64,000 bases of DNA from Amoebophrya sp. A120 (lineage: Eukaryota > Protista > Dinoflagellata). Shown one piece after another: positions 5,571 to 59,900 of the stretch (the stretch's first letter is position 1; every line of letters begins with the position of its first letter). The stretch is taken from assembly GCA_905178155.1 (NCBI GenBank), contig CAJINV010000009.1, positions 3,342,768-3,406,767 on the forward strand. Direction: 5' to 3'. The notes below the pieces were generated by a model. It was not told the origin of the DNA. It saw only the letters and a program-made list of their open reading frames with translations, and ran no database searches. The position numbers and the translations under genes were made by a program.

Positions 5571-8500
5571 ATGTTGGTCCACTTACTACGCCTTCTTCTC
5601 CGCCGAACCGCGCTTCATCTTCAAATCCTGCTCTACCTTTCCGCGCTTCTCTCCAACCCTGTGCCTTCGACCCAGAATGATGCCACACCTACCCTTTTTC
5701 TCGTCGCCGCCGAGCGGAGGCGCATGTTGCGCCGAGAACCCGTGCAGCTCCGGGACATCTTCGAGCCGGCGGAAGATGACGACGAGAGCCTTTTCGTGGG
5801 AAAAAATAAAGCCAGTCCACCTTCATTGTCCGCGAACCATGATGAGTCTGGTGAACAAAGAGCAGGTGGCCTCGCGGGACCAGAAAACTACCACGATGAA
5901 AGGGCAAGAGAAACAAGTGGAGCTAGTAGGAAGACGAGCGCCACAGTGGTAAATCGCATCGAGCCCGATCATCATGTCGACCGCGACACCAGGACGGCAC
6001 CGTTCGCGGTCACAAGTGACGCAGAGTACTACAACCCCTCCGCGGCGCTGGCGGTCGGGGAAAAAAAGGAAACGGTCGCGACCAGCACGAGGGAGCAGGT
6101 AGAAGAACAAGAATCTTTGCAGCGCACGAAGCGGATTAGGATCAAGGAAACAAGACGGGATGACGAGAAGCAGCAAGGCGAAGACGGCGAAAATAAAGAG
6201 AAGGCAACTCCTTCTACCGGGAAAACTACTTCCGCGACCTTCGAGCTCGTGAAAGAGTCCAGTCCCTTCGAGATGTCGAAGGCCGACGGCAGCGTGGTGC
6301 CATACGTTCTCCGGGCCGAACTGTATGAGAACACGAAGACCGGGGAGGGAAGCCGCTACCCCTGCGTGCTCACGGATTCCTTTCGTCTGATCGGCTACAA
6401 AATCGACGCGGAACAGTGCAAGAACGCCAAGATGTATCCGTGAAAAAAACTGTGTGAGCGTAACTTTGTAGCTAGGGCAGCATAAGAAATTCGTTTTGCA
6501 TTACAGAAACACCCTGTAATGCGCAGCTAGTACGTGAAAACAGTATGCAGCACGGCTATGACGCACTTCCAGCATGACAAGTGTAACTGTGTTGCATTTT
6601 CTGCATCAGTACATAGTTTTTTTCCTGCATAAGATGCAAACGAGGTTTCAGGAGGGCCGGTTCGCGTCGGACTACTACAAAGCGTGCTACATCGCAGTGC
6701 CGGAGTGGAATACTTTCGCTATCGACGAGGACGAAATGGTCCGGGTGAAGTTGGCGTATTGCGTTTTTTCCCTATACCGATCACGAATGTTTTTTTCTCG
6801 TCGTCCGTACAAAAAATTGGAATAGACTTCATTCACATGATCATGATGAAACAATTTGTCATGCGAGAAAGACCACGCAAGTTTTATTTTTAGTTTGTGT
6901 TTGTAATGCCGCGTTTCGCGCGGCGCTCGCGCTGGCGGTTTTGGTTTTCGCGTTCAACAACTACTTGTGGCAAGTACATTTGTGCAAACTTTGTACTTAT
7001 CAAATTTTCACTATGACAGGGAGCCCCAAGTTATGGATGTGTCAGGATTGAAATCGACAAAGTTGAAAGAACTTGTAATGCATGAAATCGATACCAGTTG
7101 AAAGCCCAGTTTCCAAGTGGCGCATGACAAATTTCGGCACCGTCTAAATCCAGTTTGTCATGCTGTTTAGGGACAGAAGGCGTCTTTTGTCATGCACTTC
7201 AGCAGCTCTATCTCAGACCCCAAACTGGCTGACAGTCGGCCTCACTTGCCATCCCTGCAAGAGAGGCACTTCATGCCTTGCAATTTATGCATGAGAAATT
7301 ATTTCAACTTTGACGATTTCGATCCTGACACTCCCATACAAGTGTTCGAAGCCGCGGCGGGGGCGATCGTGAAGATCGAGCCGGAAGAGGTTTCGGACCT
7401 ATATCATTTGTAAAAACGTCCCCACCCCAGAGTCAAGACGGGGATTTTGCAACACAAACCTTAAAGTTTTGGGAGCCACGCATGACAAGTTGCAGGCTGT
7501 AGTGTAATGCAGTTTTTCAAGGGAAGCCGCATAACAAATCCATCTCCTTATCCTGTTCACAGCATTACAAGTTCCAAAACACGACGGGGAATGCCTCTCA
7601 TGGGGATGCGCATTACAAATGCTCTTGTGCTTACAGATCTGCATGACGACTCTGTGGTGGCGGGGATGTTTTTGCACAGGATAACATACCCGAGTCCGAC
7701 AGCATGATACCGGAGCCGAGCACCGGCCTCGCCTTGGTCATTTTTCTGCTGTTCGTCTGCTGTTGGTGTGGCATGATTGTGTGCTCCATGATGATATCAA
7801 CTGCTAATGTGTCTGGGTCTTCTACAAGGTCACAACTACAACTTGTGATGCTGTCTTAGGATTCTAAAAACATTTGCATTTTTGCATGACCAGTAAGTAG
7901 AGGAGGTCCGACGTGGAGAGGGCATTTATGCTCATGCGGAATAGGCAACATGAAGCTTTAGCTTTCCAGAAATCCGTGAGGCTTCTAGTAGGCCATGCAT
8001 TACAGGTTTCGCGGTTCATGGAAAATATGCATGACAAACCTGGCAATCTAAATCTTCCAGACCTAGACATGTTTGCAGTGCATAGATGATGCTCAAGTGC
8101 GTGTTGGAAATGTTCGGAGTGAATACCTATCAAAAGTAAAAATGTCTGGGTCTGGAAACTTGTGATGCTGGGTGGCGTCTCATGATGAGGCTACAGATGC
8201 TGGCTTAACATGACAATTTTCTGAGCTCCTAGGTGTTGCCTACTCTGCATGACAAACTGCGCTTCTGCATCACAGAAAAACGCAGCTCTTGGGTAACGTG
8301 CATGACAGATTTAAGAGTCATGCCAGACAAGCATGACAAACATGAATTCTTCCAGACCCAGACATTTTTACAGTTGATAATACCAGCGTCGTCTTATCAA
8401 AAGAACAAATCCCCCTTTCATATCGAAAATGCACCACAGGGAAATTTGTTTTGCTGATTTGTGTACGCAAATGCCTCTGTATTTTTGCATACTTGGGAAG

Positions 8501-11080
8501 CAAGAGCGAAGCGACGCACTGGACAGGCCATCTGTTGTAATGCGTTTCAGCCTGGCTACAGCAGCAAGAACATCTATCATACTATTCGGTTAGACATCTG
8601 GAAACCTAAACAGGCCTAGCATGCGCCTCTGTTTCGGTTCTACTGCAAAACACAGCTGATTTGTCGTGGCCACAAATCAATCTGCAGCACGGATTTATTA
8701 TCGTTTTGATATGTGGCGGGGGGATTTATTTTCTTCTTCATACGTGTGGAAGGTGCTAGGCCAACTGAAAGCCGCGGCCTTGTCTCTCAAGGACACGCTC
8801 ACTGCCATGTTCCGTGGGAAAAATAAACCAGGCCCAGCGGAGGACGGACGGGAGGTAGAAGAAGGAGACATTGGGGCTGAAGACGGTGACAAGCCGAGTG
8901 AAGACGGGGAAGCGGAAAAGAACTCCGATGACGAAGGGCAGGACGGTGCTGACGCAGGAGCTCTGAAGGAGGACCACGCTGACGAAGCAGGGGCCGCGGG
9001 CGAAGCGCCCGTGCAGCCGGGAGGACCTGCTATCATCAAGGGCGGGAAAAAAGGACTTGCACCAGGACAGCAGAAGTCACCACCGCAGCTCGGCGCGATG
9101 CATAAAGGGGAAAAGACCAGCGGAACTATCCATTCCGGGAAAGAAAGTATCTTTTAGTACTGAAGCGACATGCATCCGCATCGCGAACGCGATCACAAAT
9201 TTTTGATCTGCTTGTTCAGAGTTGAGAAAATAGATTTGCAAGGCTGAAAAAGGTAAAAACGCTTGCCATGCAGTGTATGTTGCTGCAACCCGCCGTCGCA
9301 CGCAAGAACAGCAAAGGATAAGTACTTTTCCCTCGGATAGCCAAAACCGTGCAGAAAGGCGTGGTCGCAGGGGCCGCCGGCGGTTTGAAAGAAAGTGGAA
9401 AGGTGGTAAAGGGAGCAAAAGATGCGAAAAGCACAACGAAGCCGGACGGCACGCAGCCGCTGCAACAACCTGCCGCCCATCCCGGAGCTCCACCGGGAAA
9501 GCAGATGAAAATCCCAGCAGGAGCAGGCAAAGACGGTGATCATCCGGGAAAAATGAAAGGCGCGTCCTCCTCCGGACAGCTGCACAAAGAGGCAGGAGGA
9601 AAACCCGCACTGCAACAGCCAGCGGGTAGCAAACCCGCCGGTGTTCTCGCGGGGAAGGACCAACAGCAGCCGTCGCTGCCCAAGGGGCCGAAGGGCACGG
9701 GAATTACGCAATCGCCGGCGGGCAAGAGTCCGTCCGGGGGACAATCGCCGGCGGCGGGCAGGAGTACGAGTAGCAAGTCACCACCTGGAGGAGGAGGAGG
9801 TGGAGGCCCTCCTGCTGGAAGTGACCACAAGGGAGGCAAGAAGTCGCCGGAGAGCGCAAATATCAAGGGAACATCAAAATCTCCACCGCAGATGATGAAG
9901 TCCGGAGTTGGACCAACAAAACAGCCCGAAGCTCTTCTAGCGGCGAACAAGGGAACCACGGCAGGACCAGGGAAGGACGCCCTCGTCGGGAGTAGTGGTT
10001 TAGCACCAAAAGGAAAAAATAGTGCCAAGTCTCCACCACAAAACACGGCGCAGCCCCTATCGCAAGGAAAAATCCCCCCTCCCCATATTGAAGAGGTAGG
10101 TTTTCGAAAATTTGTGTTGCTGATTTGAGGTCACAAATCACGTTTGTGTTGCAAGAAGACAAGGGCAGCAGCTTCCGTCCCATTATGGAGGCGGTTTGTC
10201 ATGCTGTTGAGCCAACATCACGGACGCTTTTCATGCTAAGCGCCTAAGTCAAAGCCTCTCTACTCAGGCTTGATATGGGTCTGCAGTCCTCTCCAGCAAG
10301 ACAAATGCGATTTGTGTACTCAAATACAGCAACACAAATTTCGCTTTCGATATGGGGAGGGGGGATTTTTCCTCACAATAGCCCCCGTCTAGTAGTCCGC
10401 CGGGTCGTCCGGGAAGTTTGGTGGGCAGCAAGCAAGACGGGAGTAAGAAAGGCATGAATAGCAACAGCAACAATAAAGGAGCACCAGCTGGGCCAGGGGT
10501 CGGTATTGTAGTACCGTCGCAGGAGCAGCCGCCTTCTGAACGGCAGTCTGCGACGAGCGCGCCACGAGGACCCCAAGCAGGATCGCCTTCGCTTCCAACA
10601 CGCGGTTCTTCGGCGGGCGAAATGAAAGGGAAACAACAACAAATAACACCATCTTCTTCCAAGCCGGGAAGCAAAAGTGCAGCCGGTGCTGGATCACCAC
10701 CAGGGGGAGCACAACAACCAAAAGGAAGTAGTACAACTAAAATGACCTCCGACAAAGACAAGAACATGATGATGAACAAAGGCGGCGACAAGATGAAAGG
10801 AGTAAAAACGGGTAATATTCAACCAGATCTAGCCCCACCGCAAGAGGAAAGCGAGGTGGTGGTCAGGACCAAGCGGGCGAGTCACGATCGGGTAGACATG
10901 AATCAAAAAGGTGTAGGACTCCTGAATAAAGGAAAAGGATTTCCACCGCCTCCGGAACCGGAAAGCGAAGTTGTGGTCGTAACGAGAAGAGCGAGTCACG
11001 GCCACTCCGGGGAGGGCGGTCCGATGAATCACCCACTGCCGACGCCGGGTAATTTGGGCAAGGGAATGAAAAAGAAGTGA
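5571..11080 (+). CDS. Hypothetical type I membrane protein, ~1005 aa, with a G/P/K/Q/S-rich tail
   Basis: Exons 5571-6434, 6637-6755, 7020-7031, 7344-7401, 7689-7794, 8090-8127, 8385-8394, 8748-9146, 9341-10057, 10386-11080 (3018 nt, open frame). Hydrophobic N-terminus and TM segment GLALVIFLLFVCCWCGMIVCSMMM. Seven introners and two GT-AG introns. Confidence 0.8.
7032..7338. mobile_element. Family-E introner (TIR TATGGGAGTGTCAGGATCGAAAT, ~306-312 bp)
   Basis: Perfect TSD CAAGT. Other members: 14179-14490, 38230-38537, 51248-51553. Confidence 0.9.
10058..10380. mobile_element. Family-B introner (TIR core GAAAAATCCCCCCTCCCCATAT, ~290-350 bp)
   Basis: TSD GCCCC. Other members: 8395-8742, 12378-12699, 20516-20827, 23895-24204, 35868-36188, 37879-38199, 42079-42389, 48820-49108, 54638-54949 (variant), 57694-58105, 59369-59689. 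Confidence 0.9.
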
Positions 11081-11931: not shown

Positions 11932-14900
11932 ATGCTCTTCGAACCGGCCCAGCACTCGCTGCGCCGTTCTAGCTCGTCGAGCTCCCGCCCTGCAACCGGA
12001 GCAGCATGTCGTCCAAGAAGTACGACCGGTTTGGGTTCGAACCCTGCTGGCGCCCCCAATAGAACAAAGTCCAAAAACACTAGTACAGCCTGCACTTCCT
12101 CCTCCTCCCGCTGCAAGAGGGCTACAGTAAGCAGTACGCACAGGAGCAGCGGCAGCAGCTTCCCCAGCATGAACAAGGCCTACTTTGCGGCGCTCACAGC
12201 CTCGCAAATTCTCCTGCTCGCCGACGCGAGAACCTTACTAGTCCACGGGCCGGTGGATCCGAATAAGGACGGCGGAAAACGGTTCTACGCTGAAATATCA
12301 ACAACTAATAGTGTATTTTCGGTGGACGTCGTGAAGCAACAGTTCGCGGAGGAGCACCTGAAACAGGACACTGGGGGTATTGCGAGGAAAAATCTCCCCT
12401 CCCCATTTCGAAAAGGAAATTTGTGATGCTGATTTGTGACCACCACCACACTCAAATCAGCTCTGTCTTGCGTACAAGGCAAACGGCACCCATGTGGCGC
12501 ATTGTGCAGCGAGTCTGTCATGCGTTTTCGCCTATGTCAGGCTTGTTTCTCATGCTCAGCTGCTAGCCGGATGCGTACCCAAATGGGCTTAGAATATGCC
12601 AACAAGCTCTCGCTGCAATACAAAGTTCATTTGTGTACACAAATGCAGCAACGCAAGTTGTCTTCTGAATATGGGGTGGGGGCTTTTTTCACTCTGATAG
12701 TAGGGGAGGCCCGGCGCTACTACCGGGACCTCACCGGATTTTCTCTAGTGTACGACGGGCGGAAAATTGTCGGTATTTATTTTCATCATGTTGGACTGAT
12801 CGATGTTTGTCATGCAGGATATGCTTGCAAATGCAAAAGATAAGATTTTGTCATCTGGCATTTTACACACGGACGACCATCACAAGAGCCTGTTTTGCTG
12901 CTACCTGGATCCATTCAATCAAGAATTTCTACTAGCTCTCATCATCCTTTTCGCAGTGTCTACTCTCTATAATAAGTACAAAAACCAGAAACTTAAACCA
13001 CACATCAACAGACGGCCCTGCTTCCGATTCCGCGCGCAAACACCAAGCGGACGACATCGATACGATATCCCTCGAAGACATCCCGGACCGCGCAGAGATC
13101 CAGCTTCAGCGAGCTCGGGGCTCCGTGGGCGAGATGCACCGGTGGTCCCACAGCATCACCGGGATTTCGAGTTTGTACGGGGGCAGCTCCAGCGACGATG
13201 CTGCATCCGACGCGGACAGTTCATCATCCACCTCCTCAGCGGATTTGTTCACCTTTGCCTGGCAGCGAGATCTGTACCTGGCGACTGGAGTGGTACTGGA
13301 TCTCACCGATGTGAAGGTGATCGGGGTGATGCTTTTACTCCTGGCGGTACTGCTCATTCTGGTCACGAAACTCTGCTCCGCCTTGCTCGGAACGAGTACC
13401 GCCAGCTCGAAGAATCTGATCAGTTCGCCACCTCCGAGAGGGAAATCCGCAATGTCGTCAAGGTCAGCCTCGACAGCGGCGAACCGCGGGTTTTCCCGCA
13501 CACCCGGAGGGACAACGGCTGGTAGTGCGATGAAAAAAGGTTCAAAGAAAGACGATTCTCCCTCTCTACTCTACCAAGACGACGAAGAGGAGCTTTCTGT
13601 CGGGCAGAAACTGGTCCGCCGCGTGACGACGGCGATGAAGGTAAGCCCCGTGTCTGCCATGAAGGGAGGCAGTGGGAGTAGCAAGCCTTTGACAGAGAAG
13701 GGAAAAGTGAAAATATCCGGGTTCGAAGTGAAGAATTGGAACGGGGTTTACTACAATAGCATTTCAACTAGTACATCCTCTAGAAGTGGTGCTAGCAGCA
13801 GTAATTCTAGCTACAAGCTGCTGTCAAGTTCTTCGAAAAAGCACCAAGCGGTGCAATTCGTCCGGAAAATATGCATTGCAAATATGTCGGGGTCTGGAAA
13901 AGGACCAAGTTTGTCATGCATATTTTCCATGAATCATGAAGTCTGTGATGCATGCCCGAGCATCACACATTCTGCGAGAGCTTTCTGATGCTCATACCGC
14001 TTGAGAAATGCCCCCTTCGCGTGGCAAAAACTGGGTCTCTTTTGCTGTTCATGCAATACAGGTTTTATGTAGAGTCCCAAGGTAGCATGACAAGTTGCAT
14101 CCTCCCAGACCCAGACATATTTGCAATGGATAGAAAAAACCGCGGAGCAAAACGGAGCAATACGTGTTGGAAGCGAATTATGGAAGTGTCAGAATCGAAA
14201 TCGACAAAATCGAAATGATTTGTCATGCATATAATGGATTCCAGTTCTTGTTCGAACCCAGTTTCTTAGCGGTGCATGACAAATTCTGGCGTTGCCGTAT
14301 TCCAGTTTGTAATGCTGTTTAGGCAAAGAAGACTGATTCTCTCATGCTGCTTTAGCAGCTCGAGCTATAACCCCAAACAGGCTTACAATCGGCTTCACTT
14401 GCCTGCTCTGCAACACACGTATTGCGCGTCATGCATTTTATGCATCACAAATCTTTCGACTTTGTCAATTTCGATCCTGACAGTTCCATACAAATCTGTC
14501 AGCGACGAAATGGAGTTTGTTTCTAGAGAATGAGCAAACGGACGAGAAAAAGCTCCTAGCCGAGACAACGTCCATGCTATGAATTGCAAAAATGTCTGGG
14601 TCTGGAAGATAATTGCAACTTGTCATGGTAAATCTGAAGCATGCAAAAATCTGTGTTGCATGAGTGCCAAAAGCTGTCCACTTTTGACCAAGTTGGACCG
14701 GAGTTTCTCATGCAGAATAGGCATGATAGGGATCTCACAGAATGTCTGTCATGCTAAGTCCCGCATAGCAGACCGCATGGGTCATGGAAAATCTGCATGA
14801 CAGGTCTACACTCTTCCAGACCCAGACACGTTTGCACTTGATACATGCTGGGTGGCGGCAACAGCAGCGGCGTTGCAGACTGGAATTGTGTGGCGTCCGA

Positions 14901-16290: not shown

Positions 16291-19200
16291 ATGTCGTGGC
16301 ATAACAACCGCGGTTGGGGGTACAACAAGGGGGGTGGTAAGCACCACCCCGGCTACAAGCAACCCCTAATCGAGTACTTCATGGACTTTTGCCGGGACAG
16401 CGACAAGTCCGGGGTTCTGACCACCCCGACCTTTGCCTTCAACCAGCTGCCTATCGAGATCGGCGATCCGGCGGGAAAATGGTACTGCGAGCTGACGGTT
16501 TTCGACAAGGAAAAGCGGTGCCAACTGACGTATACCAACATGGAGCCGCAATTGGTGAAGAAAACCGCGCAGGAACAGTCCATCGTGCAGTTTATCAACT
16601 GCAAAAATGTCTGGGTCTGTAAGAGTGCAAGACTTGTGATGCTGCATCAGGATGTGAAAAAAATCTGTGTTGCATGAGCAGCAGAAGGAGCCTAATTTTT
16701 GTTACGCAGAGAGGGCATCTGTCATGCGGAATAGGCATGAAGAATCCCTCAAAAAACCTGTGAAGATGCTAGAGCATGCATCACAGACATCACGGCCCAT
16801 GCAAAACGTGCATGACAAGTCTCAGAATCATCTGCCAGACCCAGACATTTTTGCATTTGATACAATTCTTCGAGCAACGGTTCATCCCCCTCGACGTGAA
16901 CCAGTTTTACTCCACTTTAGGGGAGGCCGAGCGGCAGAAGTCGCATGTGGAGCGGCTCCGACAGCAAAAAATCATCGGGCTGACCAAAAAACAGATCGCG
17001 GAGCGGAAGGCCCAGGGTGTGGGGTTCGAGTACCTGGCCCAAGCGCAGGGCGATGGAAACCTCATGAATGCGGCAGTGGATACGCTGACCGACGAACAGC
17101 TGTTGGCGCTGTCGCAACAAAACGTGGACTTCGGGAAAGAAGTGAAGTTGCTAACCGAAGACGAAGAGAGACGATTGCTAATCGAGGGGGGAGCGGATTT
17201 GGCCCCGGCGATTGGTGGAGGAAGTATGTCGGAAGAGGAAAGCGCAGGGAAGATGGCGTATTTATTACTAAATTCTTTTGATGTACAACTTTACAATAAA
17301 TGGCACTTCGCATGACAAGTTACTCATTCAAAAATTTTGGTCTGTGATGCATTGCCAGTGTATAGAGATTAGAGTTTGTGATGCGCATGTCACAATACAA
17401 ACAGCGCCGACGACGAGTACCTGAAATACCTGCTTCCGATATCAGCTGCAAAAATGTTTGGGTCTGGAAGATTGCAACTTGTGATGCTGTTTTTGGACTC
17501 TAAGAAAATTTGTATTGCATGACCAGCAAGAGGGGTGCGCTTTGTGCTACACGGACAGGGCATTTCTCATGCGCAAGGTGCACCAGGAAGGGTTCTAAAA
17601 ATCTGTAATGCTAGGTCATACATTACAGACTATCATGGGTCATGAGAAATATGCATGACAAGTCTTGCATTCTTCCAGACCCAGACATTTTTGCATTTGA
17701 TATCCGAACGAGGACGACGACGACGAGGACATGGACCCGGATCTGAAGCTATGCAATGCAAATTTTTCATCTCGGTCTGAATTTGTGATGCGAGATGTGC
17801 ATGCGAGAAGGATCTGTCGTGCAGGAAGAGAACCGGCGTTTATTTTTTTGTCATGCGGGCTGCCACGTCGAAGTCGACCGCCAGTTTGTCATGCAAGTCA
17901 CAATTGGAAAATGAAAAATGAAAATCCGGAAGTGGAACAAGCCTTTATTGAACTGCTCACTCGTACGCGTAGTTTTTGATGCCGTATCAAAGGCACCAGA
18001 CCTACGTAGGTTTGGTCATGCAAGACTCAACAGCATGATATAAAAAACCAAAAATCTTCAAAAATTCTCTTGCTTTGTTCATCTCAGACCCAGATTAGGA
18101 TTTTTTCCATTGCATACGAACAATCCCTCGGCCTGCCCCCAAACGCGAAAAAACAACGGACGGATAAAGGTTCTGCTTTCAAGGGCGCGGCCGTATCCCA
18201 CAGAAAAAAGCAAGCAGGTCATATTTGTCATGCAAAAGTAAATAGACAAAAAAATCTGTATTGCGTTTGCGTGTCCTAAGCAGCTGCACCATGCTATGGG
18301 CTCGCCGATGACAGATTTTTTCGTGTATTTATTTTTGCATTACAAATCTGACCTGCCTGTCTTTTTCTGTGGCATAGGCGGGTACGGGCGCGAACAACAC
18401 CGGGCTCGGGCAGAAGGTCGAGTACCCGAACATGATGCCGACGAAGGGGGGCAAGTGGGGGAAGTTTGGGAAGCTGCCGCAACAGGGCTGGGGAAACTGG
18501 AAGGGATATCCTATGTAAAAACGTCCTCACCCCAGAGTCAAAATCGGAAATCTGCAACACAAATCTCCAAGCTTTGGGAGTTCTGCATGACAAGTTTCCA
18601 TCTGCAGGGTAGTGCTAGTTAGCAAGGGCAGCCGCAGGAGAAACCCAGCTTCTCATCCTGTTTACAGCATTACAAAGTCCAAAACACGATTGGAAATGCC
18701 TCTCATGCAGATACGCATCACAAATGGTTCTGTCATTGCGCATTTGCATGACAACTCTGGTGTCGTGGGGACGGTTTTGCCGAGGATAAGGGAAAAGGCG
18801 GGGGCAAGCACGACATCCCGGACTGGCTGAAGAACAGCAACCAGGCGGAGATGCTGCTCCGCGGCCAGAGCGGCCGGCTCGGGAAAAAGCACAACCCGAA
18901 CGAGATTGCGCTGCCCGGCGAGCTATGCATGGCAAATATGTCTGGGTCTGGAAGATTGTGAGATTTCTCATGCTAGTTTGGCATGACTCTGAACTCTGTA
19001 TTGCGTAGGGCCATCGGAAGACCTCCTCTTGTCTGTCATGCAAAAACGATGTTTCTCATGCGGAATACGCAACACAGAGCCACGGGAAAATCTGTCATGC
19101 TTGACGGTGCATTACAGTGCGCTTCCTGTTCACTAACATGCATCACAAGTTTCCAGACCCAGACATTTTTACGCTTGATACGAGCAGTTCAAACGCGCGG

Positions 19201-22200
19201 TCGAAGCCGTCAGCAAGGAAGAGGAGGTATGACAGTGCACAACTCCCCCTCCCCCTCATTTGTATTGCGTGAACAGCAATACAAACACCGCCACACGTGG
19301 AGCCTGTGCATGACAAATTCATGCGCCTACTGTAGTGCTGTTTGGGCTTCCGGAATCTGTCATGCAAACAGTGCGACAGAAGAGCACTTGGATTTGGTAT
19401 TTTGCATGACAAATGAGGGGGAGGGGGAGTTGTGCACTTTCATAGGAGGACGAGGAGTTTGCGCGCATGCAGCCGCCGGAACCGTTACCGGCCGGGGCGA
19501 TTCCGCTGTTACCTTTAGGTGGATCCTATCAATTGCAAATATGTCTGGGTCTGGAAATTTGTGATGCTAAAATGTGCATGATGAAAACACCTCCTCATGT
19601 AGGAAAGCATGACAAGTCTGCGCAACGCTTTATCATACGAGCTCCGCATGAGAAACTGCGTTTTTGTATGACGTGAGAGGCTGCCACTTTTGTTGGTCAT
19701 GCAATACAGATTTCACAGGAATGCAAGACCAGCATTACAAGTTCCAACTTTCCAGACCCAGACATTTTTACATTTGATAGATCCGCGGGGGAGATCCGGG
19801 AGGCGGTCGCGCGAAACGCGATTGCTATGCATTGCAAATATGTCTGGGTCTGGAAGAATGCAAACTTGTGATGCGCATTGTGCAATCTCTCATGCGCAGG
19901 CAGCAAAAGCTGCCCCCTTTTTGTCTCCAAAGTGGGGCATTTGTCATGCGGATTCGGCATTGCGGGAGCTTGTCGAAACCTGTCATGCTAGAGCTTCCAT
20001 GCCAGACCTTCTGTGTCATGCAAAAGTAGCATGATTTTTCTTCCAGACCCAGATATATTTGCATTTGATAATTGCGCCCGAGCCGACGAATCCGAAGTTC
20101 AAGGAGGAAAAAGCTCTGCCCATGGCGGGGACCTTGATGCCCTTGCCGAAAGGGGATATGTCGATCACCTCCGCAATCATCAAGTATGGAATGGAAATAT
20201 GTCTGAGTCGGCAAGGTTGCAACTTGTGATGCTGTCTTTGGAGGCTAAAAAAAAATAAAATTTGTATTGCATGACCAGCAAGAGGAGTTCAGTTTGTCTT
20301 TGTGCCACGCGGAGTGGGCATTTCTAATGCGGAATACGCATCAGAAGGCCCTTTTTGAAAATCTGTGATGCTAGGTCATGTATTACAAGGTTCATGGGTT
20401 ATAATGCAGAATATGCAAGACATCAAACCTGGCAAAAATCTTCCAGACCCAGACATATTTGCAATCCATATCAAGCAGGCCGTGACGAAAGCGCCGGAGG
20501 CGAAGGACGACCCGATATTGTAATGAAAAATCCCCCCTTCCCATATCGAACTGAAAATTTGTGATGCTGATTTGTGGCCACAAATCAGCTTTGTCTTGCG
20601 TACAAGGCAAACGGCACCCATGTGGCGCATTTTACAGCGAGTCTGTCATGCGTTTTCGCCTAAGTCAGACTTGTTTCTGATGCTCAGCTGCTAGCCGTAT
20701 GCGTACCCACATGGGCGTAGAATAAGCCGACAAGCTCTTGCTGCAATACAAAGCTCATTCGTGTACTCAAATCCAGCAACACAAATTGCTTCTTTGATAT
20801 GGGGTGGGGGCTTTTTTCAGTTTGATACCCGAAACTCCGCGCCGCGATGAAGAGGGAGAAAATCGTGCAGGAGGCGGCCAAACGGTTCGAGATGGCGCAA
20901 TCCCGCGGGCAGTTTTTGGACCCGAAGCCCGGGTTCGCGTACCGGACCTTCATATGCAATGCAAAAATGTCTGGGTCTGGACGATTCTTACATTTGTCAT
21001 GTGCATGTCTGACATGACTCGAGAATCTGTGATGCATAGGGGCATTGGAATAAAAGGCTCTCCTATCTGTCATGTAAAACGTTGTTTGTCATGCGGAATA
21101 CACATAGCAGCTCAAAAGTTTGTCATGCCTGGCTGCGTATTGCAGTCCGGCCATCATCCACTTTTAGCATTACAAGTTTCCAGACATCCAGGGATTTTTG
21201 CAGTTGATACTTCAAATTGGTCACAGGCGTGGAAATCCCCGAGCCAGTGTTGAACATCCAGGGACTGTTATGCAAGAAAAAAACTATGTCTGTGTAAGTC
21301 AAAGTCTATGATGCAGGAAATGCAAAACTGTTACACTTGTCATGCTGGATCTGCGTAATAGGCTAGCTTCATACGTGTTTCCACTGATACTAGCTGCGCA
21401 TGACAGGTTTTCCCTGTAATGCAAAACGAATCTGTGATGCTGCTATTCCTAGAAAGTTAATACACCTACACAGTTTTTTTCCTGGATAACTGTGGTCCGT
21501 CGTGGACCCGCAGGCCCGGCCGGCCGGGTCCGCAGTCGCGGAAGCGCGCGGGGTCGGCATCGGGGCGCCGGCGTTTCAGCCGCAGGAGGGGCGGGGCGGC
21601 GAAACCGCGGGGGACAACGATTCGGAGGGGGAGGACGGCCTGGGTCCGGGCAAGGACGCGGGGCAGTATCAAATGCAAATATGTCTGGGTCTGGAAACTT
21701 GTGATGCAAGGAAGGGAATAGTGCGCACACTGTAATGCGCTGCCAAGCATGACAAGTTTTTCCGTGGTTCTGAGTTGCGTACTCCGCATGAGAAGCTGCG
21801 TTTTTGCATGACAGGCCAGAGGAGCTCTCTGTGGTGACGCAACACAGAGTTCACAGTCATGCCAGACTAGCATGACAAATCTCGCAACTTCTACTTCCCA
21901 GACCTTGACTCGTATTTGCGTTTGATAGCCAGTCCGCGCTGATGAAGGCGGGCGTGGATGCGGAGATGGAGCACGAAACCGGGTATCCAAGAAAAAAAGG
22001 TTGTTCGTGTAAATTTGTGATGCGCAACATGCATTAATTGATTGAGCCTGTCATGCTGTGCCTGCATTGTAGGGTCCATTCAGTGGCGTTTTCCCCTACT
22101 ATCTGCGCATGACAGGTTTTTGCTGTCATGCGAAAGATATTTGTCATGCTGATCCTCCAAGAGAGTTACATCTACAATCTTTTCTTCCTGGATACCGGGG

Positions 22201-43300: not shown

Positions 43301-44211
43301 TTTTACATAGGATACACCGGGTAGCTGATTTTAAGCAAACCAGCAACTGTATCCGGTTGTGTTTCATTTCCATGAAAACCAAACCAAGGCTATTGTTGAA
43401 CGATTTCCGGGTGGAGATTTTCGACGACGAAAACTTCGCGCTGGCCACTTCCCGGCGACTGTTGCTTCCCGGCACCGCGTATCAAATGCAAAAATGTCTG
43501 GGTCTGGAAGAATGCAAGATTTGTCATGCATATTTCTCATGACCCATGATAGTCTGTGATGTATGCCCTAGCGTCACAGGTTTTTAGAACCCTTCCTGAT
43601 GCACCTTCCGCATGAGAAATGCCCTGTCCGTGTAGCACAAACTGTATCCCTCTTGCTGGTCATGCAATACAAATTTTTGTAGAGTCCAAAAACAGCATGA
43701 CAAGTCTGGCACTCTTCCAGACATCCAGGGACTTTTGCAGTTGATACCGCGATGGAAGCAGAAGCGGTTGTCGCGAAACCGATAATATCAAATGCAAAAA
43801 TGTCTGGGTCTGGAAGGTTGCAACTTGTGATGCTGTTTTTGGAACGTAAAAAAAATCTGTATTGCATGACCAGCAAGAGGAGTTCAGTTTGTGCTACGCG
43901 GAGTGGGCGCGTCTCATGCGGAATGCGCATCAGAAGGCCCTTCAAAAATCTGTGATGCTAGGTCATGCATTACAAGCATCACGGGTTATGCAAAATACGC
44001 ATGACAAACCTGGCAATCTTCCAGACCCAGACATTTTTCCAGTTCATAGATGAGAGTACTGCAAGCTTTGCACCCGCGGTTGGTGAATGAAAATTTTTCC
44101 CAGTTGCCCTGGAAAGCGGACGAGGAGTTGTTGGCGATGGGGGACTTTTTGAGAAATCTCCCAGGCGCGACGCGGGGCATGGGGATGAATATTGTGGAGA
44201 CGCCGGAATAA
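40396..44211 (+). CDS. Hypothetical protein, ~552 aa
   Basis: Exons 40396-40417, 40702-40765, 40982-42078, 42395-42454, 42683-42724, 43009-43030, 43320-43479, 43752-43785, 44054-44211 (1659 nt, ATG to TAA in frame). All 8 introns are introners. Confidence 0.75.
40418..40696. mobile_element. Family-C introner (TIR TATCCTGAGTAAAAACGTACCCACACCAGAGT, ~280 bp)
   Basis: Perfect ~32-bp TIR. Other members: 7402-7683, 18507-18788, 29191-29470, 32954-33232, 35111-35392, 37533-37812, 42725-43003, 43031-43314, 55640-55921. Confidence 0.92.
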
Positions 44212-45089: not shown

Positions 45090-45323
45090 ATGGGAACATC
45101 CAGTAGATCCTCGAGCAGGAGTCAAAGCGGCCGCCGGCCGAAAAAGAATACAATCGGACGGGAACTGATCAATCTTTTAGTCCTCTTCACGATCTTCAGC
45201 CTCATCATGTGGTTCTCGCCCCTACCGCATCTGCACCAGACGCACACGCAATGCTTGGAGACGGGCGTGGCACTGGCCATTGGGTTTTTGGTGGTCAGTT
45301 TTAGCTTCGCATTGTCGATATGA
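45090..45323 (+). CDS. Possible small two-TM protein
   Basis: 77-codon ATG ORF with two hydrophobic stretches and no other support. Confidence 0.25.
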   Translation: MGTSSRSSSRSQSGRRPKKNTIGRELINLLVLFTIFSLIMWFSPLPHLHQTHTQCLETGVALAIGFLVVSFSFALSI

Positions 45324-47924: not shown

Positions 47925-50900
47925 ATGTCCAAGATGTTGAAGTTGGACTTGTATACCGGAACTAGTTCTTCATCTTCCGCTTACCCGTCGCCCCGATGTA
48001 CAAGCAACTACGCTTCTTTTCCCGATGAAACACGGGCCCGAGAGCAACAGCGACTGCTACGGGGGGCGGAAGTAGTAGACGCAAATACTCCAGCACCAGT
48101 AGCAGATGATCCTGCGGGTGGCAGTGCTGCGGTCGCGTTCCTGCACGACCTGCACGACTACATGAAAGCCACGCTGGTGCGGATAAAAACAACACCACTG
48201 AAGGTTACATCGAGCTTTTTTTCAAAATCAAAATGCAGTAGTAGAGCTAACAGAACCAGAAGGAAGCGAAAGCGACCCAAAGAACCACCTGGACAGAAAT
48301 ACCCTTGTACTCCGATGGCGATTTCAGCGTCGAGGCTGCCAACCGCTTCATCTTTCTTCCACAGAGACCGGAGAAAAAGGAATAAGCACGACAAGAACTC
48401 CATACCCGGGTTCTCTTCAGCTCAAGAAATAAGAAAAACGAAAACCGCAGCGGCATTAGCTCTTCTCCTCTCCCTCTTCTTCTCCAACCTGTACCAAATT
48501 CTCCATTTTGTCCAAGCAAAAATCCCCGATGTCGCCGTTGACCAACTCCGCAGTTCCCTCCCGAACGGGAATTACATGGTGAACATGTTTGAACAGTGCG
48601 ACAAGGTTCTCCTTTCCACCCCGGGAAGGCCGGACGGGTGTCAAATTGACACGTATTCCGCGGAGTACGCTTTTGAAGTTTTCAACCTGAAACGCTTGTT
48701 CGAAACCGAGAAGACGTTCTTATTAACCACCTGTGACGGATACAGAAGGGTCCAGTCGAACATGATGCTTGCGGAAACGAGCTGCAAAACCGCTTCTACC
48801 CCGAACTTGGACTACTGGCTATCAAAAGGAAAAATCCCCCCTCCCCATATCGAAAACGAAAATTGTGATGCTGTATTTGAGTACACAAATTGTAACGCTA
48901 GAAGGCCAAGAGACGCAGGCAATTTGTCATGCTGTTTCCCACTTTCAGCTGCCCCCTGTCATGCTGAAGATGCAAGGCTTCCCCACGCCAACCAGCACTA
49001 CAGTCCGCATCTTTTCCCTTCTAGCATGACAAAGCTGATTTGTGGCCACAAATCTGCATCGCAATTTTCTAGTTTGAGTATGGGGTGGGGGGATTTTTCA
49101 CTTTGATACTGGCCTTTGGAGTGCATGATACTGCAGGCGGAATTGGACCGGCTCTACTTGAACAAAACACTGGAGCAAAACATCGTCTGCAACATGCTGA
49201 TATGCATTGCAAATATTTCTGGGTCATCTGGGAAAGTTGTGCAACCTGTCATGCTAAGTCTGGATCGTGCAAGAAAAGTCTGTGTTGCAGGATTTCCAAA
49301 AGATGTCTACTTTATTTGACCAAGAAGTCGAGAGGTAGTTTCTCATGCGGAAAAGCCATGATAAAGATCGCACAGAATGATCTGTGATGCCAGGGCATGC
49401 ATCGCAGATCTCACGCGTCATGCAAAATGTGCATGACAAACCTTCTTGCACCCTTCCTGGACCAGACATTTTTACATTTGATAGCTAACGCAGGGAAGAC
49501 GCGACGCCATGGCGGTGGAGGACGCAAGTCGGATCAATGTATCAAGTGCAAATATTTCTCTCTCTCTGGAAAGTTGTGATGCTAGTTTGCGAACCATTTA
49601 GCAACCTACAATATGCGGACGCGCATGGCAAGTTTTTGAGCGACGAGGTCGTCTTGCGTAAACTGCATGAGAAACTTCGTTTTCGCTTTACAGAAGAATA
49701 GCGCGATAGCGCAACATGCATAACAGGTCTTTCTCTCCAGCCAGCAGAGCATTACAATTTCCAGAGCCAGACATATTCGCAACGCATAGACCGTCGTGAA
49801 CTGCAACCAGCTCGCGCACTCCATGATCACAAAATACCACCCGTTTTTGTACCGGCCTCGCGTCGAGGGGATCGACCACCTGTTCCCGCAGAAGTGCCGG
49901 GAGAGACTGTGCACCACGCAGAAGTTTTTCTACTCCAGGATAAGGCCGAGGGCGGTGCAGAACTACACGTTGAATGCGAGTGCGAACTTAGTGTACACGA
50001 CGACCCCAGTGCCGGTGGTGGTCGTATCAAATGCGAAAATGTCTGGGTCTGGGAGATTCCGAGATTTGTCATGCAATTTTTTCAAGCTCACCCACGTCTG
50101 GAATGCAAGGCCTAGTATCACAGGTTCTGCGGCTCCTCGGTGATGCGTATTCTGCATGAGAAATGCCCTCTCAGCACGGCCAGAAGTGGGCACCTTTTGC
50201 ACGTTCTGCATCACAGATCTTTGTAGAATCCGAAACACGCATCACAAGTTCGGATCCTTCCAGACCCAGACATATTTGCATTTGATAGGTCGTGAATACG
50301 AGCAACGGGTCGAATGGGACGACGCTGTTACTGCGGGAGCTGTATCAAATGTAAAAATGTCTGGGTCTGGAAGAATCCAACTTGTCATGCTGATTTTGGA
50401 TTCTAAAAAAATCTGTATTGCATGAGCAGTAAAGAGGGTCCAAATTTTGCAGCACGGAAAGAGCATTTGTCATGCGGAATAGGCATCAGGAAGCCCTCTC
50501 GAAATCTGTGATGCTAGGGCATGCGTCACAGACTTGAGGAGTCATGCGAAATGTGCATGACAAACCCGGCAATCTTCCAGACCCAGACATTTTTACATTT
50601 GATAAGCTACTGGGGGAAAGTGAAAGAACAAAAGGGTATTCTTCATCATCTCTTGTCGAGCAATACAGCCTGCAGCTGAGCGAGAATGTGGAGCAGACAT
50701 TTTGGAAAGCGCGGAAGTCTTTGAACAACCAGGATTATAATGGGCAGCTTGAGGAGCTTCTACACGGGGGGAATAATAATAAACCAGCTGGAAATTCAGG
50801 GTCAGGACTGCATCCTGCCAACTCTGACGACGTCTTCCTTACGACCAATACACAGATGAGCAAGGAAAGTTGGAAACCGCGAGGGGAGCAGACAAGTGAA

Positions 50901-53900: not shown

Positions 53901-56900
53901 CTAAACTAGGATCGAGGCCAAGTTTTGTCATGCGGACACCGCATTTGTACGTGTACGGGAAATTATTTACTGTGGATAGACATGTACGAAATCGCGATCA
54001 GTACCACGTCCAAAGTCGCCTGTCTCTTCCTCTGCGACATTGACCCCGATTGCCTCGGGGCGACGGTCTCCGCGGGGAATAACGCAAACCTATCAAATGT
54101 AAAAATGTCTGGGTCTGGAAACTTGTGATGTTAAAATGTGACTGGTGGACGGACTGCAATACGCAGCCAAGCATGACAAATTTTTCAATTACTGCTGTGC
54201 TTCGTTTTCCGCATGGCAAGCTGCGTTTTTGCATGACAGGCAAGAGGCCATTTTCCTGCTCATGCATTACAGATTTATGAGTCATGCCAGACAAGCATGA
54301 CAAACTTGCATTCTTCCAGACCCAGACATATTTGCAATCAATAAAACCCTTGCCGGCACCACTTACTCGACCCTTTGCGACGGAAGAAGTTGACCGGTTT
54401 TCGGCTCGGTTGTCAACCAAGTTATGCATGGCAAAAGTATCATATACTCGTAGTGCTGCATTACAAATTTTCTCAGCATTACAAACCCAAGGAAGTTGTA
54501 GTGCTGATTTAAGTCGAGAAAAACATTGCAATTGCTAGCCACTTACGAAGATACTTTTGCAATTCATACGAGTCTGTCCGCAGCGAGCTTAGAGCGGTCG
54601 GACCAGGATTGCTGGCTGAAGAAGATCATTTTAACTGTATTACAATGAAAAATGCCCCAACCCCCGAACTTGGGAGCATTTGTATTGCAAACCTTTCCAA
54701 GTGAAACGCTCGCCCTCTTGCATCTATCAACATCACAGATTTCCAATCATGATGAATAGCGAAAATTTGTATTGCAAAAGATCCCAGCAAGCGCGGCGCT
54801 TGTGATGCAAGCAATGCTATATACGCCTAGACTTTGCATCACAAAGATTCATATTCCTTTCATGCATGCATTACAAAAACCTTTCATTTGGAAACTTCGC
54901 ATCACAACTTAGTGCAACTTTGGGGGTGGGGGCGCTTTTCACTGTAATAAACTGAGTCACCAACAGAGGACCGGGAGGAGACCGACGTGATTCTGTATTT
55001 GATGATCGCCTTGGGCATCGTCGTTGGGGTAGCCGCCGCCGCGGGGCTGGCGGTGGTCGTTCGGTTTGGATTGTTGGAGTTGGAGAGGCGGAAACGGTAT
55101 GCATTGCAAATATGTCTGGGTCTGGAAGGATGGAACTCGTCATGCTGCGTCTCGAGGACAAAGAAATCTGTGTTGCAGGAACGCCAAAAGCTGCCTAATT
55201 CTTGCTAGGCAGAAGGCTGGCTCTCATGCGGAATAGGCACGAGGAAGGTTTGACGCAGAATTTGTCATGCTTTTGTGTGCCTGCCAGGAGACCATGCGTG
55301 TGGTCCGCGAGATGCATGACAAATCTCACACTCCTCCAGACCCAGACATATTCGCATTTGATAAACGGGAAAAGAGGAAGAGAAAAGTCGACCCGACGAA
55401 GTACGAAATGGAATTCGCGGCGGAAGGCGACGATCGGATATCGTGTGCAAAAGTATCGTACTCGTATTGCAATCATGCATTACAAATCTTTTTCTTAAGG
55501 TAAATCCGCATTACAAATTTTCTTTCTCATGCAGAGGAAATTTGTAATGCATTAATACGAGTACGATACTTGTGCAGTTCATATCGGAAGATCTTGGAAA
55601 ACCTGAAACAGCCGAAGACGGAGGAGGAAAAGTTGATGGTATCCTTTGCAAAACGGTGCCCACCCCATAGTCAAGCTGGTAATTCTGCAACACAAATCTC
55701 CAAGTTTTGGGAGTTGTGCACGACAAGTTTCCCTCTGCAATGTAGTTCTGGTAGCAAGAGAAGCCGCATGAGAAAGCCGTTGCGTCATCCTGTTTACAGC
55801 ATTACAAATTCCAAAACACGACTGGAAATGCCTTTGTTTCATGGAGCTGCGCATTACAAATGTTCCTGTCGTTGCGCATTTGCGTGACAACATTGGGGTG
55901 GGGAAGTTTTTACATAGGATAGATGGCGTTGGCAAAGATTGGGAAAGTGGTCCGCGCCGGGCAGAAGCTGGATTTCGCAAAGGATTTCGACCGCATTGAG
56001 AAGAAAGCGACAATTGACGCACCGAAACTGGAGAAGAAGATTGACCCCTTGTTAGACGACGACGACGACGCGATCTCCGATATGCAGATCGGCGAGGTGC
56101 AGGCGGCGGACGCGAAAAACTGGCGGGAACAGGACGACTTCAGGAAGATGCGGAGGTTGAAAAAGCGCGCGAGGAAAGCGGGGCTGAAACTCGATCGGTA
56201 TCTATCTTTACGGCAGCTGCAAGCGAGTAAGGGTTTGCGAGACCCGCGGACCATTAGATCCTTAACCATGCATATCAACTGCAAAAATGTCTAGGTCTGA
56301 AAACTTGTAATGCTGCGTTGGGAATAGTGAATGCTCTGTAATGCGCAGGCAAGCATGAGAAATGTCTGCGCTTCTTTGTGTTGCGTCTTTCGCATGACAA
56401 ACTGCGTTTTTGCATGACAGGCAAAAAGGGTCTCTTCTTGGACACGCATCACAAACTTTTTGGCCATGCCAGACAAGCATGACAAGTCTCGCAATCGTCC
56501 AGACCCAGATATTTTTGCATTTGATAATGCAGGAAAACGGGGAATTCACCATGAATGACGCGGACCGACCGTGGAAGGAGTCCAACGACGGGGCGCGCTA
56601 CATGGCGACGGATCGGAATAAGATGATCAAGGTGGGAGATGACGAGCACGGCGATTTCGATCTGAGCAAAATGGGCGTGGACACCAGCAAATTGGTGGGG
56701 ACGGGCCGGATCTCCTTCCTGGAAGACACGGAAACTGTGCCGGCTTACGCGCTAGAAGGAGGGCAAGGGCAAGATATCAAATGCAAATATGTCTGGGTCT
56801 GGAAGAGTCGGGGCTTGTCATGCACATTTTGCATCACCGGTGAGGTCTGCGATGCTGGTGCTAGCATCACAGATTTTTTGAGAGCTTCTTGATGCTAATC

Positions 56901-59900
56901 ACGCATGAGAAATGCCCTCTCCGCGTGCCAAGAACTGACTCCTCTTGCTGCTCCTGCAACATAGATACTTTTAGAATTCACAGACAGCATTACAAGTTGC
57001 ATTCTTCCAGACCCAGACATATTTGCATTTGATACAAGACTCCTTGACGCAACTCGACGCGGACTCGACCATGGACTTGCAAAAGAAATTGCACTACGCA
57101 TTGCAAAAGTACCGTACTCGTACTAATCACAGTCACGCAAGACAAATCTTTTCTGTAAGCCAAAACCCCATGACAAATTCCTTCTGTCATGTTGTGCTAG
57201 TTTGTATTGCAGGCACTACTAGAACAAGTACTATGCTTTTGCAATGCATAGGCAGCAGCCGGGGGCGAGCGTTACCGCCGAGGAGCGGGCACGACAGCTG
57301 TTGTCCGGCGATGTTACCGCGGGCGACTTTGTCGATCTGGAAGATTCCATGATGGACGACAGCTTCATAGAAGAGAGGAAAAAAGTCATGATCGACAAGT
57401 TCGCGCCGGTCAGCGACAAGAAGGGGGAGGTATAGTCGAGACTTTTGAATTCCGATGTTTTTTTGCGTTATTTTTCATCAAGCACTGCAAAGCCAAAGAT
57501 AAAGAAACAGAGGATCATGTAGGTTTTCGTTTTGCATGAAAAAAACCTCCCTCGTCGTCTCGATGCATATGTTAGTTTACATTTCAACCCAATTCACCTT
57601 GTCAGCTCCTGATGCGGCAGATCCAGCCGAAGAAAGGCCCGGCAAAGGAAACCATTCCGCAATCCCCGAAGCGCGAGAAGAAGTTTCCGGCGGTATCACA
57701 AGGAAAAATCCCCCCTCCCCATATCGAAAGGAAGTTTCTGATGCTGGAATTGCGTATACAAATCAGGTTTGTCTTGCAGTAGAGGACTGCAGGCTCCTGC
57801 CAAGCCTGAGTAGAGTGCTTTGGCCTAGGCGCTTAGCATGAGAAACGACTATGCTGTAGGAGCAACAGCATCACAAACCGCCTGCATAATGCGGCAGAGC
57901 CTGTGGAGTTGTGTTCTTGCAAGACAGACATGATTCGTGGTCTCAAATCAGCAAGATTTGGGGTTGAGAGTTCGGCGTGTTGGGGGTGAGGGACCCCCGA
58001 CGGCTGGCCTACGGATATTAGGTGGAACTAAGGCTCAAATCAGCAAGACAAATTTTCGGATACATACCTTTTCGATATGGGGAGGGGGGATTTTTCCTCT
58101 CAATAGGCGGGGACAGATTTAACCACGCAGCCGACGGAATTCAACCCGATGTCCCTCGAAGCGACGGATCCAAAACGGTCAATGGCAAGCTTTTCGGTCG
58201 AGCCAAAATCACCCCAGTCGCAGCGGATAAAATACAAAGAAGAATTCGAAAAAGAAGCAGCGGAGGAGGATTACTACGACCCGATAGAAAAATACCCGTC
58301 TTTAATATGAAATGCAAAAGCATCGTACTAGTATAAATCGCATCACAAATTTCCTCAGCATGAAAAATAAAATTTGTAATGCGGATTTCGCTTGAGCAAG
58401 AAACTTTTAATGCATGTTTGCAATTACTACGAGTACGATATTTTTGCACAGGATATTTAATCATCTCCGTGGATTTGTTCAAGGGGCACGGGGGAAGTTT
58501 AGGGTTGAAATTCGAAGTATCAAATGCAAAAATGTCTGGGTCTGGAAGAATGCAAGTTTGTCATGCTTGTCTGGCATGACTCGAGAATCTATGTTGCATA
58601 GGCACGAACGAGCCCTCTTAACTGTCAAGCGAAAAGGCAGTTTGCCATGCGAAATACGTAAGACATGGCAGCCACTAGATTTGTCATGCATAGCTGCGTA
58701 TTGCGGCGCGTCTACGATTCACTTTTAGCATTACTAGTCTCCAGACCCAGACATATTTGCAATCCATACGAAGACACGGATGTGAACCCAAATTCCACCA
58801 GAGTAATCGGCTTTCACGACCCGGTGCAGAAGCGTTGGGGTTGGCGAATCGGGGACGAGATCGTCGCGATTTTGCAGAGTAGAAGAGCGGGGGATAAAGC
58901 GTGGTTCCCGATCGAGAATTTCGACCAGCTTTACAAAAGGTATAGAAAAGTAGTTTACGATGGTTTGTGGCTTTTACTTTTTGTGATCGATGCATTGCTC
59001 CTCACAACATGCAGTGTTCCATTTGGGATGCGTGACTACTTCCTAATCAAGAAAGATGCTCATACCACTCACCGACATCAAAAATACTTCTATCAGGTTC
59101 ACGACTATTATGGAGAGAAAAAAGTGTGTCACAGTCACTAAGTTGCAGGTTTTGCATCACAAATTTTTTTAGCATCGCAACTTCTCCTTGTATTGCAGAA
59201 ACACTAGGGAAATCCCTTATGAAGTGTGGCTGTGATGCATTTTTACGCATGACAGACAATTTTGTGTTGCAAAAATGCCCATGAGTGATCGTGACGAACT
59301 TTTTTCTTTTGATAACCATCAAGGAGACGTGGCAGGAGTTCCAGGAAAACAAGCGGATTTACTTCGGTTATCAAAAGGAAAAATCTCCCCTCCCCATATC
59401 GAAAAGGAAATTTGTGATGCTGGATTTGCGTACGCAAATCGGATTTGCCTTGCAGTAATGGACTGCAGGCATATGCCAACCCTGGGCAGCGAGGTTTTGA
59501 CATAGGCGCCTAGCATTACAAACATCCACGGCGTAGGCCCAACAGCATCGCAAACCGCCTGCATAATGTGGCGGAGCCTGTGGCGTTGCCTTCTTGCAAC
59601 ACAGAGACGATTTGTGGTCACAATTCAGCATTGCAGCTTTTCTATGGTTTCCTTTTCGATATGGGGAGGGGGGATTTTTCCTTACGATATCGGTGTCTAC
59701 CGCCCCAACATCCCGAAGGGGGAAAAATACCCGCCCCTGCCGATGAAACTCCATATGATCACGGCACGGTATTTGGACGACCGCGGGTCCGATTTCGACG
59801 ACAGCTCAGAGGATGAGTACTGGCAGTTGACGGACGATATCAACGTGAAGAAGAAGCGAAAAACTTTGCCACGTGCGGACTGGCTGCGATACTGCGCGTG

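Follow-up and report, generated by a model that had tools for sequence, protein, structure and literature searches.

The dinoflagellate Amoebophrya sp. A120 harbours introners, strain-specific elements found in thousands of copies, which resemble miniature inverted-repeat transposable elements (MITEs) and are spliced without regard for the GT-AG rule (Farhat et al., 2021, PMC7789003). These non-canonical introns carry inverted repeats of 8–20 nt that form a hairpin, and direct repeats of 3–5 nt at their borders; where the border lies with respect to the hairpin 'remains unknown', or is 'variable', owing to the repeats (PMC7789003). No transposase was reported in A120 by Farhat et al. (PMC7789003), and the present analysis made no search for one. 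We are concerned here with a stretch of 64,000 nucleotides of this genome (the window: positions 3,342,768 to 3,406,767 of contig CAJINV010000009.1, assembly GCA_905178155.1; coordinates below count from its first base). Its elements are the published introners, with TAT…ATA ends, a hairpin made of inverted repeats of about 24 nt, and a 5-bp target-site duplication (TSD) the two copies of which sometimes differ. The border that the original description left unplaced can be located with the help of these mismatched repeats: they indicate one register, made of four upstream bases and one downstream base, and in this way resolve the ambiguity left by the direct repeats. They also allow one to quantify the freedom of the repeat bases that are discarded, which comes out about midway between that of free bases and that of coding ones.

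The introners of Micromonas and Aureococcus are the nearest relatives in kind. In the account that PMC7789003 gives of the work of Huff et al. (2016), an inverted-repeat DNA transposon becomes, together with its duplication, an intron. As far as that account goes, splicing there removes, like in A120, the element and one equivalent of the duplication, so that the frame is restored, but the borders are canonical GT-AG, whereas under the register inferred here GT…AG borders appear in just 14 of 560 A120 elements (2.5%). The first dinucleotide of the latter is GT in 183 cases, AT in 161, CT in 124 and TT in 92, which is not what canonical U2-type borders look like. Two introner surveys were also named for comparison (PMC9860276 and PMC12130899). 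The elements themselves were published in 2021; a description of the silent or non-silent make-up of their repeat mismatches was not found in the literature searched.

Two other systems deserve mention. In the nonconventional introns of euglenids the border dinucleotides are not conserved and a stem joins the intron ends. By description the A120 elements resemble them in both respects, and the euglenid introns are not known to make up mobile repeat families with target-site duplications. In ciliates, TA-bounded internal eliminated sequences are short transposon-derived inserts in coding sequences that are cut from the DNA while one repeat copy is kept. TA bounds and one retained repeat are shared by the A120 elements, which by contrast keep their full depth in the DNA and are absent only from RNA.

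The elements were retrieved by a scan for TAT…ATA pairs 40–4000 bp apart, with at least 15 of the 24 terminal bases inverted-complementary and 5-bp flanks differing by at most one mismatch. About 80 elements of the window answer this description. Most are 145–325 bp long, they start with TAT(C/G) and end with (C/G)ATA, and with 15–24 complementary bases out of 24 at their termini they are capable of forming hairpins; one of them, folded with its flanks (43786..44048), makes a long stem of −114.8 kcal/mol (z = −7.3). All 18 coordinates listed in a first-pass annotation of the window, made from the sequence alone, coincide with the first base of an element starting with TAT(C/G). Over 264 kb, 161 elements are bordered by 5-bp direct repeats, perfect in 132 cases and with one mismatch in 29, and in the assembly as a whole (115,520,608 bp, 401 contigs) 16,398 ends fit a single repeat pattern, two mismatches at most being allowed. 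Terminal inverted repeats associated with a duplication of fixed length are those of MITE-type transposons; so is insertion polymorphism, with clean empty sites in both directions between A120 and the whole-genome shotgun record JACKZZ01. Hairpin-forming repeats, direct repeats within the range of 3–5 nt, non-canonical splice sites, absence from mRNA and the A120 host itself all place the elements among the introners. Removing an element together with five bases opens long frames on the + strand: 772 codons across 17 junctions, 851 across 6 and 494 across 8. Of the 72 copies of the main family collected in 354 kb, 34 were reversed by MAFFT, though nearly all sit in + strand genes, which means that the same element works as an intron in either orientation.

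What remains in the messenger can be read where the two copies of the duplication differ. RNA and DNA contigs were aligned to window positions 39300–45200, around the gene of a 552-aa protein, P0002, found by single-exon search and entered at NCBI as 'unnamed protein product [Amoebophrya sp. A120]'. A transcript contig of 2270 nt (depth 73) agrees with the upstream copy at each of the six positions that are informative, spread over five elements (TSD bases 1, 3, 3, 4, 4 and 4). Its aligned pieces stop precisely where the downstream copy has its mismatch at 40766 (base 3), 43031 and 43786 (base 4 in both), they take in what the upstream copy has at 42079 (base 1) and 40418 (bases 3 and 4), and the unaligned stretches between them are just as long as they should be if each of seven elements leaves with five extra bases. 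Elements are skipped in this contig as well as in P0002. The upstream copy is likewise recognized in the Ile of P0002 at 43786 (base 4) and in the Ala of a second annotated protein, P0001, at 35575 (base 1). Base 5 has another origin. At 42455, P0002 reads …YGT-R-FTDW…, and its Arg, being AGA, needs the downstream A at base 5. In the flank past the window end (window numbering), the upstream base 5 at 113789 would create an in-frame TAG within a frame of 592 codons, where the downstream copy and the empty site of JACKZZ01 both have GAG; at 162659, the downstream base 5 is also the base of the ortholog. Taken together, the transcript contig, the two annotated proteins and the stop-codon case point to a fixed 4+1 register, with an mRNA comprising upstream bases 1–4 and downstream base 5, and this register fits better than a floating junction.

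The first-pass annotation had proposed that either copy can reach the mRNA, because the junction floats within the repeat or because removal resembles recombination or strand transfer between direct repeats. There is some truth in the first statement, since both copies contribute, yet they do so as a fixed 4+1 chimera and not interchangeably: the upstream base is found six times out of six at bases 1–4 in the one contig, with P0001 and P0002 in agreement, and neither a junction that floats nor a recombination-like removal is supported. The element would leave the pre-mRNA together with five bases, no more and no fewer, and in a single register. On either side the cut would follow TSD base 4, making the intron N+TAT…ATA+NNNN. 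Counted from the hairpin, it would lie one base out at the 5' end and four bases out at the 3' end, irrespective of the sequence around it. In our reading, the invariant U-A-U of the element would come to occupy positions +2 to +4 of the putative intron, much like a GUAUG-type donor whose first base is free. For a spliceosome that seems to do without U1 and has tens of thousands of non-GT-AG introns to excise, a register of this kind provides a testable handle on the mechanism.

Two further features of the duplication were recorded in the coding elements of both genomes. It lacks a clear target motif, T only being scarce. There is also a phase bias: its first base is the third base of a codon in 209 of 451 cases, so that 46% of the inferred junctions are in phase 0 (phases 0, 1 and 2 number 209, 108 and 134 under the inferred register).

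The starting observation was that, among single mismatches between the two copies in the window, 14 of 18 were synonymous. Frames were called again, first by open-frame length and then from the log-likelihood of codons, with a model for which 57 long frames served as training set, taken from 264 kb after splicing (the window and 100 kb on each side). The earlier codon pairs come back with both methods at 16 of the 18 sites. At 7402 the frame is ambiguous, 8395 (GTC/GTG) was settled by hand, and 35575 (GCC/TCC, Ala/Ser) was also checked individually. The tally of 14 in 18 was thereby re-derived, by program for 16 sites and by hand for two, and mismatches were again seen at all five TSD positions.

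To know what such a figure means we need to know what chance would give. The mutation spectrum was drawn from 377 close pairs of element interiors, with a stricter set of 283. Transitions make up 57% of the interior differences in the former, and in the latter CpG transitions run 2.2 times faster than other transitions. (C<->G transversions, with 14.5% of the differences between interiors of close copies in both genomes, are unusually frequent.) A random change in perfect duplications of known frame is silent with a probability of 0.29–0.31. With one free and one coding copy, a null built from this empirical spectrum, CpG term included, expects a silent share of 0.46–0.47 for a ratio of non-synonymous to synonymous rates (omega) of 0, and of 0.42–0.44 for an omega of 0.15. 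As a coding benchmark, 586 codons aligned between A120 and JACKZZ01 display 52 silent differences out of 73 (0.71), which implies an omega of about 0.17, a silent divergence (Ks) of about 0.10, and a one-free-copy null of 0.42. Against the latter value 14 of 18 gives p = 0.002; with a true share of 0.60 the probability of at least 14 in 18 is 0.09, and for this reason the 78% of the window is best seen as the upper tail of a wider spread.

The sample was then enlarged. For A120 it comprises 354 kb (the window, 200 kb of flanks and thirty 3-kb loci), and for JACKZZ01 120 loci (L051–L170) amounting to 827 kb, obtained by a pattern scan of metagenome contigs; the final frame calling takes the duplication from either copy, so that versions creating a stop are retained. 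Single mismatches are synonymous in 27 of 36 cases in A120 (0.75), namely 11 of 13 in the window with the same pipeline (0.85) and 16 of 23 outside (0.70), and in 42 of 73 cases in JACKZZ01 (0.58). Outside the window the two genomes together give 58 of 96 (0.60), a share that rejects 0.42 (p = 0.0002), 0.47 (p = 0.0057) and 0.71 (p = 0.017) alike. All single mismatches pooled are 69 of 109 (p = 6e-6 against 0.42). Pairs with two mismatches are synonymous in 23 of 58 cases only (0.40, both genomes), bringing the full set to 92 of 167 (0.55), which rejects both 0.42 (p = 0.0004) and 0.71 (p ~1e-5). An apparent stop at L098:879 proved to be an artefact of swapping one base in a codon with two mismatches. 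The larger sample halves the synonymous excess seen in the window. The silent excess there is real, but the view that both copies evolve as if coding is not supported when generalized, with a pooled share of 0.55 facing 0.71 for true coding sequence. Seen from the other side, codon-changing positions, in retained and discarded copies together, evolve at 0.5–0.7 of the neutral rate, where about 1.17 is expected with one free copy and about 0.34 with two coding copies. The repeat mismatches lie about half-way between free and coding, and both extremes are rejected.

Comparison with JACKZZ01 tells on which bases some of these changes fell. This record is 83–95% identical to A120 in two orthologous blocks and contains the same introner families, and on these grounds we treat it as a putative sister strain. 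The blocks (L072, orthologous to window positions 110–120 kb, and L162, orthologous to 156–164 kb) correspond to flanks past the window end. Nearly all insertions in both are strain-specific, facing clean empty sites with a single copy of the 5-mer; one insertion is common to both strains and 92.6% identical. Eight changes could be polarised by means of the empty sites. Six of them are on discarded bases (one stop, two missense-like, three silent-like) and two on retained bases (one silent, one without a called frame), a distribution that fits neutrality or a partial, codon-aware constraint. The fallback offered in the first-pass annotation, a removed copy under strong constraint of its own, is too strong in the face of that stop and those two missense-like changes. 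A freeze of the discarded copy that would be blind to codons was rejected as well: it needs 0.1–0.3 of the neutral rate, for which 21–40% of the changes are expected on discarded bases, and 6 of 8 were seen (p = 0.002–0.05). Extended genome-wide, the JACKZZ01 assembly could decide the constraint on discarded bases.

The explanation that we favour, and hold as a whole to be probable, combines A120 introners cut in a fixed 4+1 register, mismatches of mixed origin, and weak selection on the discarded bases. The mismatches would be a mixture of silent substitutions in retained bases and of substitutions in discarded bases, and such a mixture would by itself make most differences fall on third positions, with no need for a junction that floats. 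The 14 of 18 of the window would then be the high tail of a true share near 0.55–0.63, still above the 0.42–0.47 expected for free discarded bases. The residual excess would most likely come from weak purifying selection on the discarded bases, for example if the register shifts within the repeat in a few transcripts, and such rare shifted-register splicing under efficient selection is the explanation that we would prefer for it. A more explicit version of this last step can be put forward as tentative and less likely than not: selection on discarded bases would be codon-aware, hairpin-guided splicing tolerating small shifts of register, and the small leak that follows filtering out codon-changing substitutions. 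In a very large population even a small leak of the wrong copy, in a minority of mRNAs, could count. If this were true, the duplication would act as a buffer that renders imprecise non-canonical splicing harmless.

Several observations weigh against this explanation. The RNA evidence consists of one assembled contig, which is blind to minor isoforms, and of two proteins derived from annotation. The base-5 rule is drawn from one protein residue, one case of stop avoidance and one conserved base, and the residue at 42455, considered alone, also fits the use of the entire downstream copy. With all mismatches outside the window the synonymous share is 78 of 146 (0.53), borderline when set against the omega = 0 bound of 0.47 (p = 0.07). 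The two genomes also differ somewhat, with 0.75 in A120 and 0.58 in the sister strain (Fisher p = 0.09). Short contigs may have weakened the signal through their frame calls, as the strictest frames of JACKZZ01 give 17 of 24 (0.71). A minor leak of discarded bases into mRNA may, for its part, stay compatible with the assembled contigs. Raw RNA-seq runs sharing the species label of the A120 runs (X11–X13, 2026) placed only 4 reads on 5.9 kb and probably come from a different Amoebophrya strain.

The first alternative keeps the fixed register and dispenses with constraint altogether: the discarded bases would decay neutrally, and the excess would come from sampling, from the choice of the window, or from differences in rate, silent sites evolving faster than intronic ones for example. 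The double mismatches, which sit at the null, speak for it, as do the borderline share just quoted, the six polarised changes out of eight on discarded bases (the neutral prediction is 0.70), and a Ks between strains (0.10) higher than the divergence measured in the single element that they share (0.074). The single mismatches stand in its way, those outside the window and the pooled ones exceeding 0.42 significantly and the former exceeding 0.47 too. Silent sites would have to evolve about three times faster than discarded bases to reach 0.60, and frame errors can merely lower the observed share. We regard complete absence of constraint as rather unlikely. Other ways to account for the excess were considered on the way. 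A mutational cause was rejected: CpG transitions, at no more than 2.2 times the rate of other transitions, leave the silent share expected of random changes at about 0.31 or less. A symmetric constraint demanding that the copies match was rejected by reasoning, in that silent changes in the retained copy would be penalised equally and the expected ratio left unchanged. The asymmetry of strong and weak bases between copies, tried as an aid to polarisation, was uninformative (15 versus 16), and non-coding insertions were too few to be compared with coding ones. Element interiors lie 8–10% from their subfamily consensus, with a median of 11% to the nearest neighbour; with mixed subfamilies, these figures bound the age of the elements only loosely.

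The original proposal, in which the junction floats or removal proceeds by recombination or strand transfer between the repeats, would have either copy commonly present in mRNA and both under full coding constraint. It accounts well for the tally in the window and for the single mismatches of A120 at large, the share of which is indistinguishable from the coding benchmark. We nevertheless find it improbable in view of the transcript contig and of the proteins that concur with it, of the stop and the two missense-like changes that discarded bases would otherwise bring into the message, of pooled shares of 0.55–0.60 that reject 0.71 (p ~1e-5 to 0.02), and of the 40% only of double-mismatch pairs that are synonymous. 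Less probable again is gene conversion between filled and empty alleles of young, polymorphic insertions, in which the lone copy of the empty allele, kept under coding constraint, would replace now one repeat copy and now the other, importing silent polymorphisms and erasing private changes, with the discarded copy never translated. Insertions that are nearly all strain-specific in two blocks imply that filled and empty alleles coexisted recently, and silent divergence between strains is high (about 0.10), but each conversion tract would need to stop right at the edge of the insertion, often enough for roughly a fifth of the elements, and the polymorphism estimated within 5 bp is too low for 0.2 silent mismatches per element. 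Finally, removal from the DNA of transcribing nuclei by direct-repeat recombination, after the manner of ciliate internal eliminated sequences, is in our view very improbable; in its favour are the TA-bounded elements that interrupt frames and leave one repeat-equivalent behind, and against it DNA contigs cross the element/exon borders at a depth of 38–47 (42–45 in unique flanks), with no element-free joint among the DNA matches listed (assembled contigs drop rare forms), and it is the RNA contigs that are without elements.

Table. Introners with mismatched target-site duplications (TSDs) and the gene of P0002, in window coordinates.
Feature	Position	Strand	Remarks
Introner, TSD ACCTA/ACATA (base 3, Leu/Ile-like)	7402..7683	+	Frame ambiguous, scores 5.0 vs 3.9
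Introner, weak gapped inverted repeat, TSD CGTCT/CGTGT (base 4, GTC/GTG Val)	8395..8742	+	Hand-read; outside ungapped filter
Introner, TSD CGAAT/CAAAT (base 2, GCG/GCA)	14179..14490	+	Scan and codon model
Introner, TSD CAGTT/CAATT (base 3, CAG/CAA)	16593..16862	+	Scan and codon model
Introner, TSD GGCCG/GGCGG (base 4, GCC/GCG)	18194..18376	+	Inside the 772-codon frame with 17 junctions
Introner, TSD GGCAG/GCCAG (base 2, GGG/GGC)	21667..21927	+	Scan and codon model
Introner, TSD GCAGA/ACAGA (base 1, CGG/CGA)	23475..23737	+	Scan and codon model
Introner, TSD CGAGC/GGAGC (base 1, GTC/GTG)	25256..25517	+	Scan and codon model
Introner, TSD AGATT/AGCTT (base 3, Ile/Leu)	27127..27277	+	Scan and codon model
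Introner, two TSD mismatches AGCGG/GGCTG (Lys-Arg vs Arg-Leu)	34414..34688	+	
Introner, two TSD mismatches CGAAA/CAACA	34775..35040	+	
Introner, weak inverted repeat 13/24, TSD GCCGA/TCCGA (base 1, Ala/Ser)	35575..35832	+	Annotated protein Ala = upstream copy
Introner, perfect 24/24 inverted repeat, TSD TAGCA/TACGA	40418..40696	+	RNA contig: upstream bases 3, 4
Introner, TSD CGACT/CGGCT (base 3, CGA/CGG)	40766..40976	+	RNA contig: upstream A
Introner, TSD GCCTC/ACCTC (base 1, GTG/GTA)	42079..42389	+	RNA contig: upstream G
Introner, TSD CACGG/AACGA (bases 1, 5)	42455..42677	+	Protein Arg = AGA, downstream base 5
Introner, TSD CACAG/CACCG (base 4, AGG/CGG)	43031..43314	+	RNA contig: upstream A
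Introner, TSD GATAA/GATGA (base 4, Ile/Met)	43786..44048	+	RNA contig and protein Ile = upstream; hairpin fold
Introner, TSD GCTGA/GCTAA (base 4, CTG/CTA)	49201..49483	+	Scan and codon model
Introner, TSD AGCTG/AGCTA (base 5, CTG/CTA)	50343..50604	+	Scan and codon model
Introner, TSD CAAGT/CGAGT (base 2, CCA/CCG)	54423..54568	+	Scan and codon model
Introner, TSD ACTAT/ACCAT (base 3, ACT/ACC)	59109..59314	+	Scan and codon model
Gene of 552-aa A120 protein P0002	40123..44549	+	Covered by 2270-nt transcript contig; 7 elements removed, 5 extra bases each

With respect to the table, the annotated protein P0001 (655 aa) appears to be mis-modelled at window positions 34336–35392. It drops the Pro/Glu-rich end of exon 34063–34413, reads exon 34691–34774 in a different frame and skips the 65-nt exon 35046–35110, and with a gene model that looks wrong there it is of little use at 34414 and 34775. 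Larger composite elements of 1.1 kb, bordered by perfect 5-bp duplications, are also present, at 62684–63795 in the window and at −10596..−9443 and 74831..75959 in the flanks; they probably carry nested insertions.

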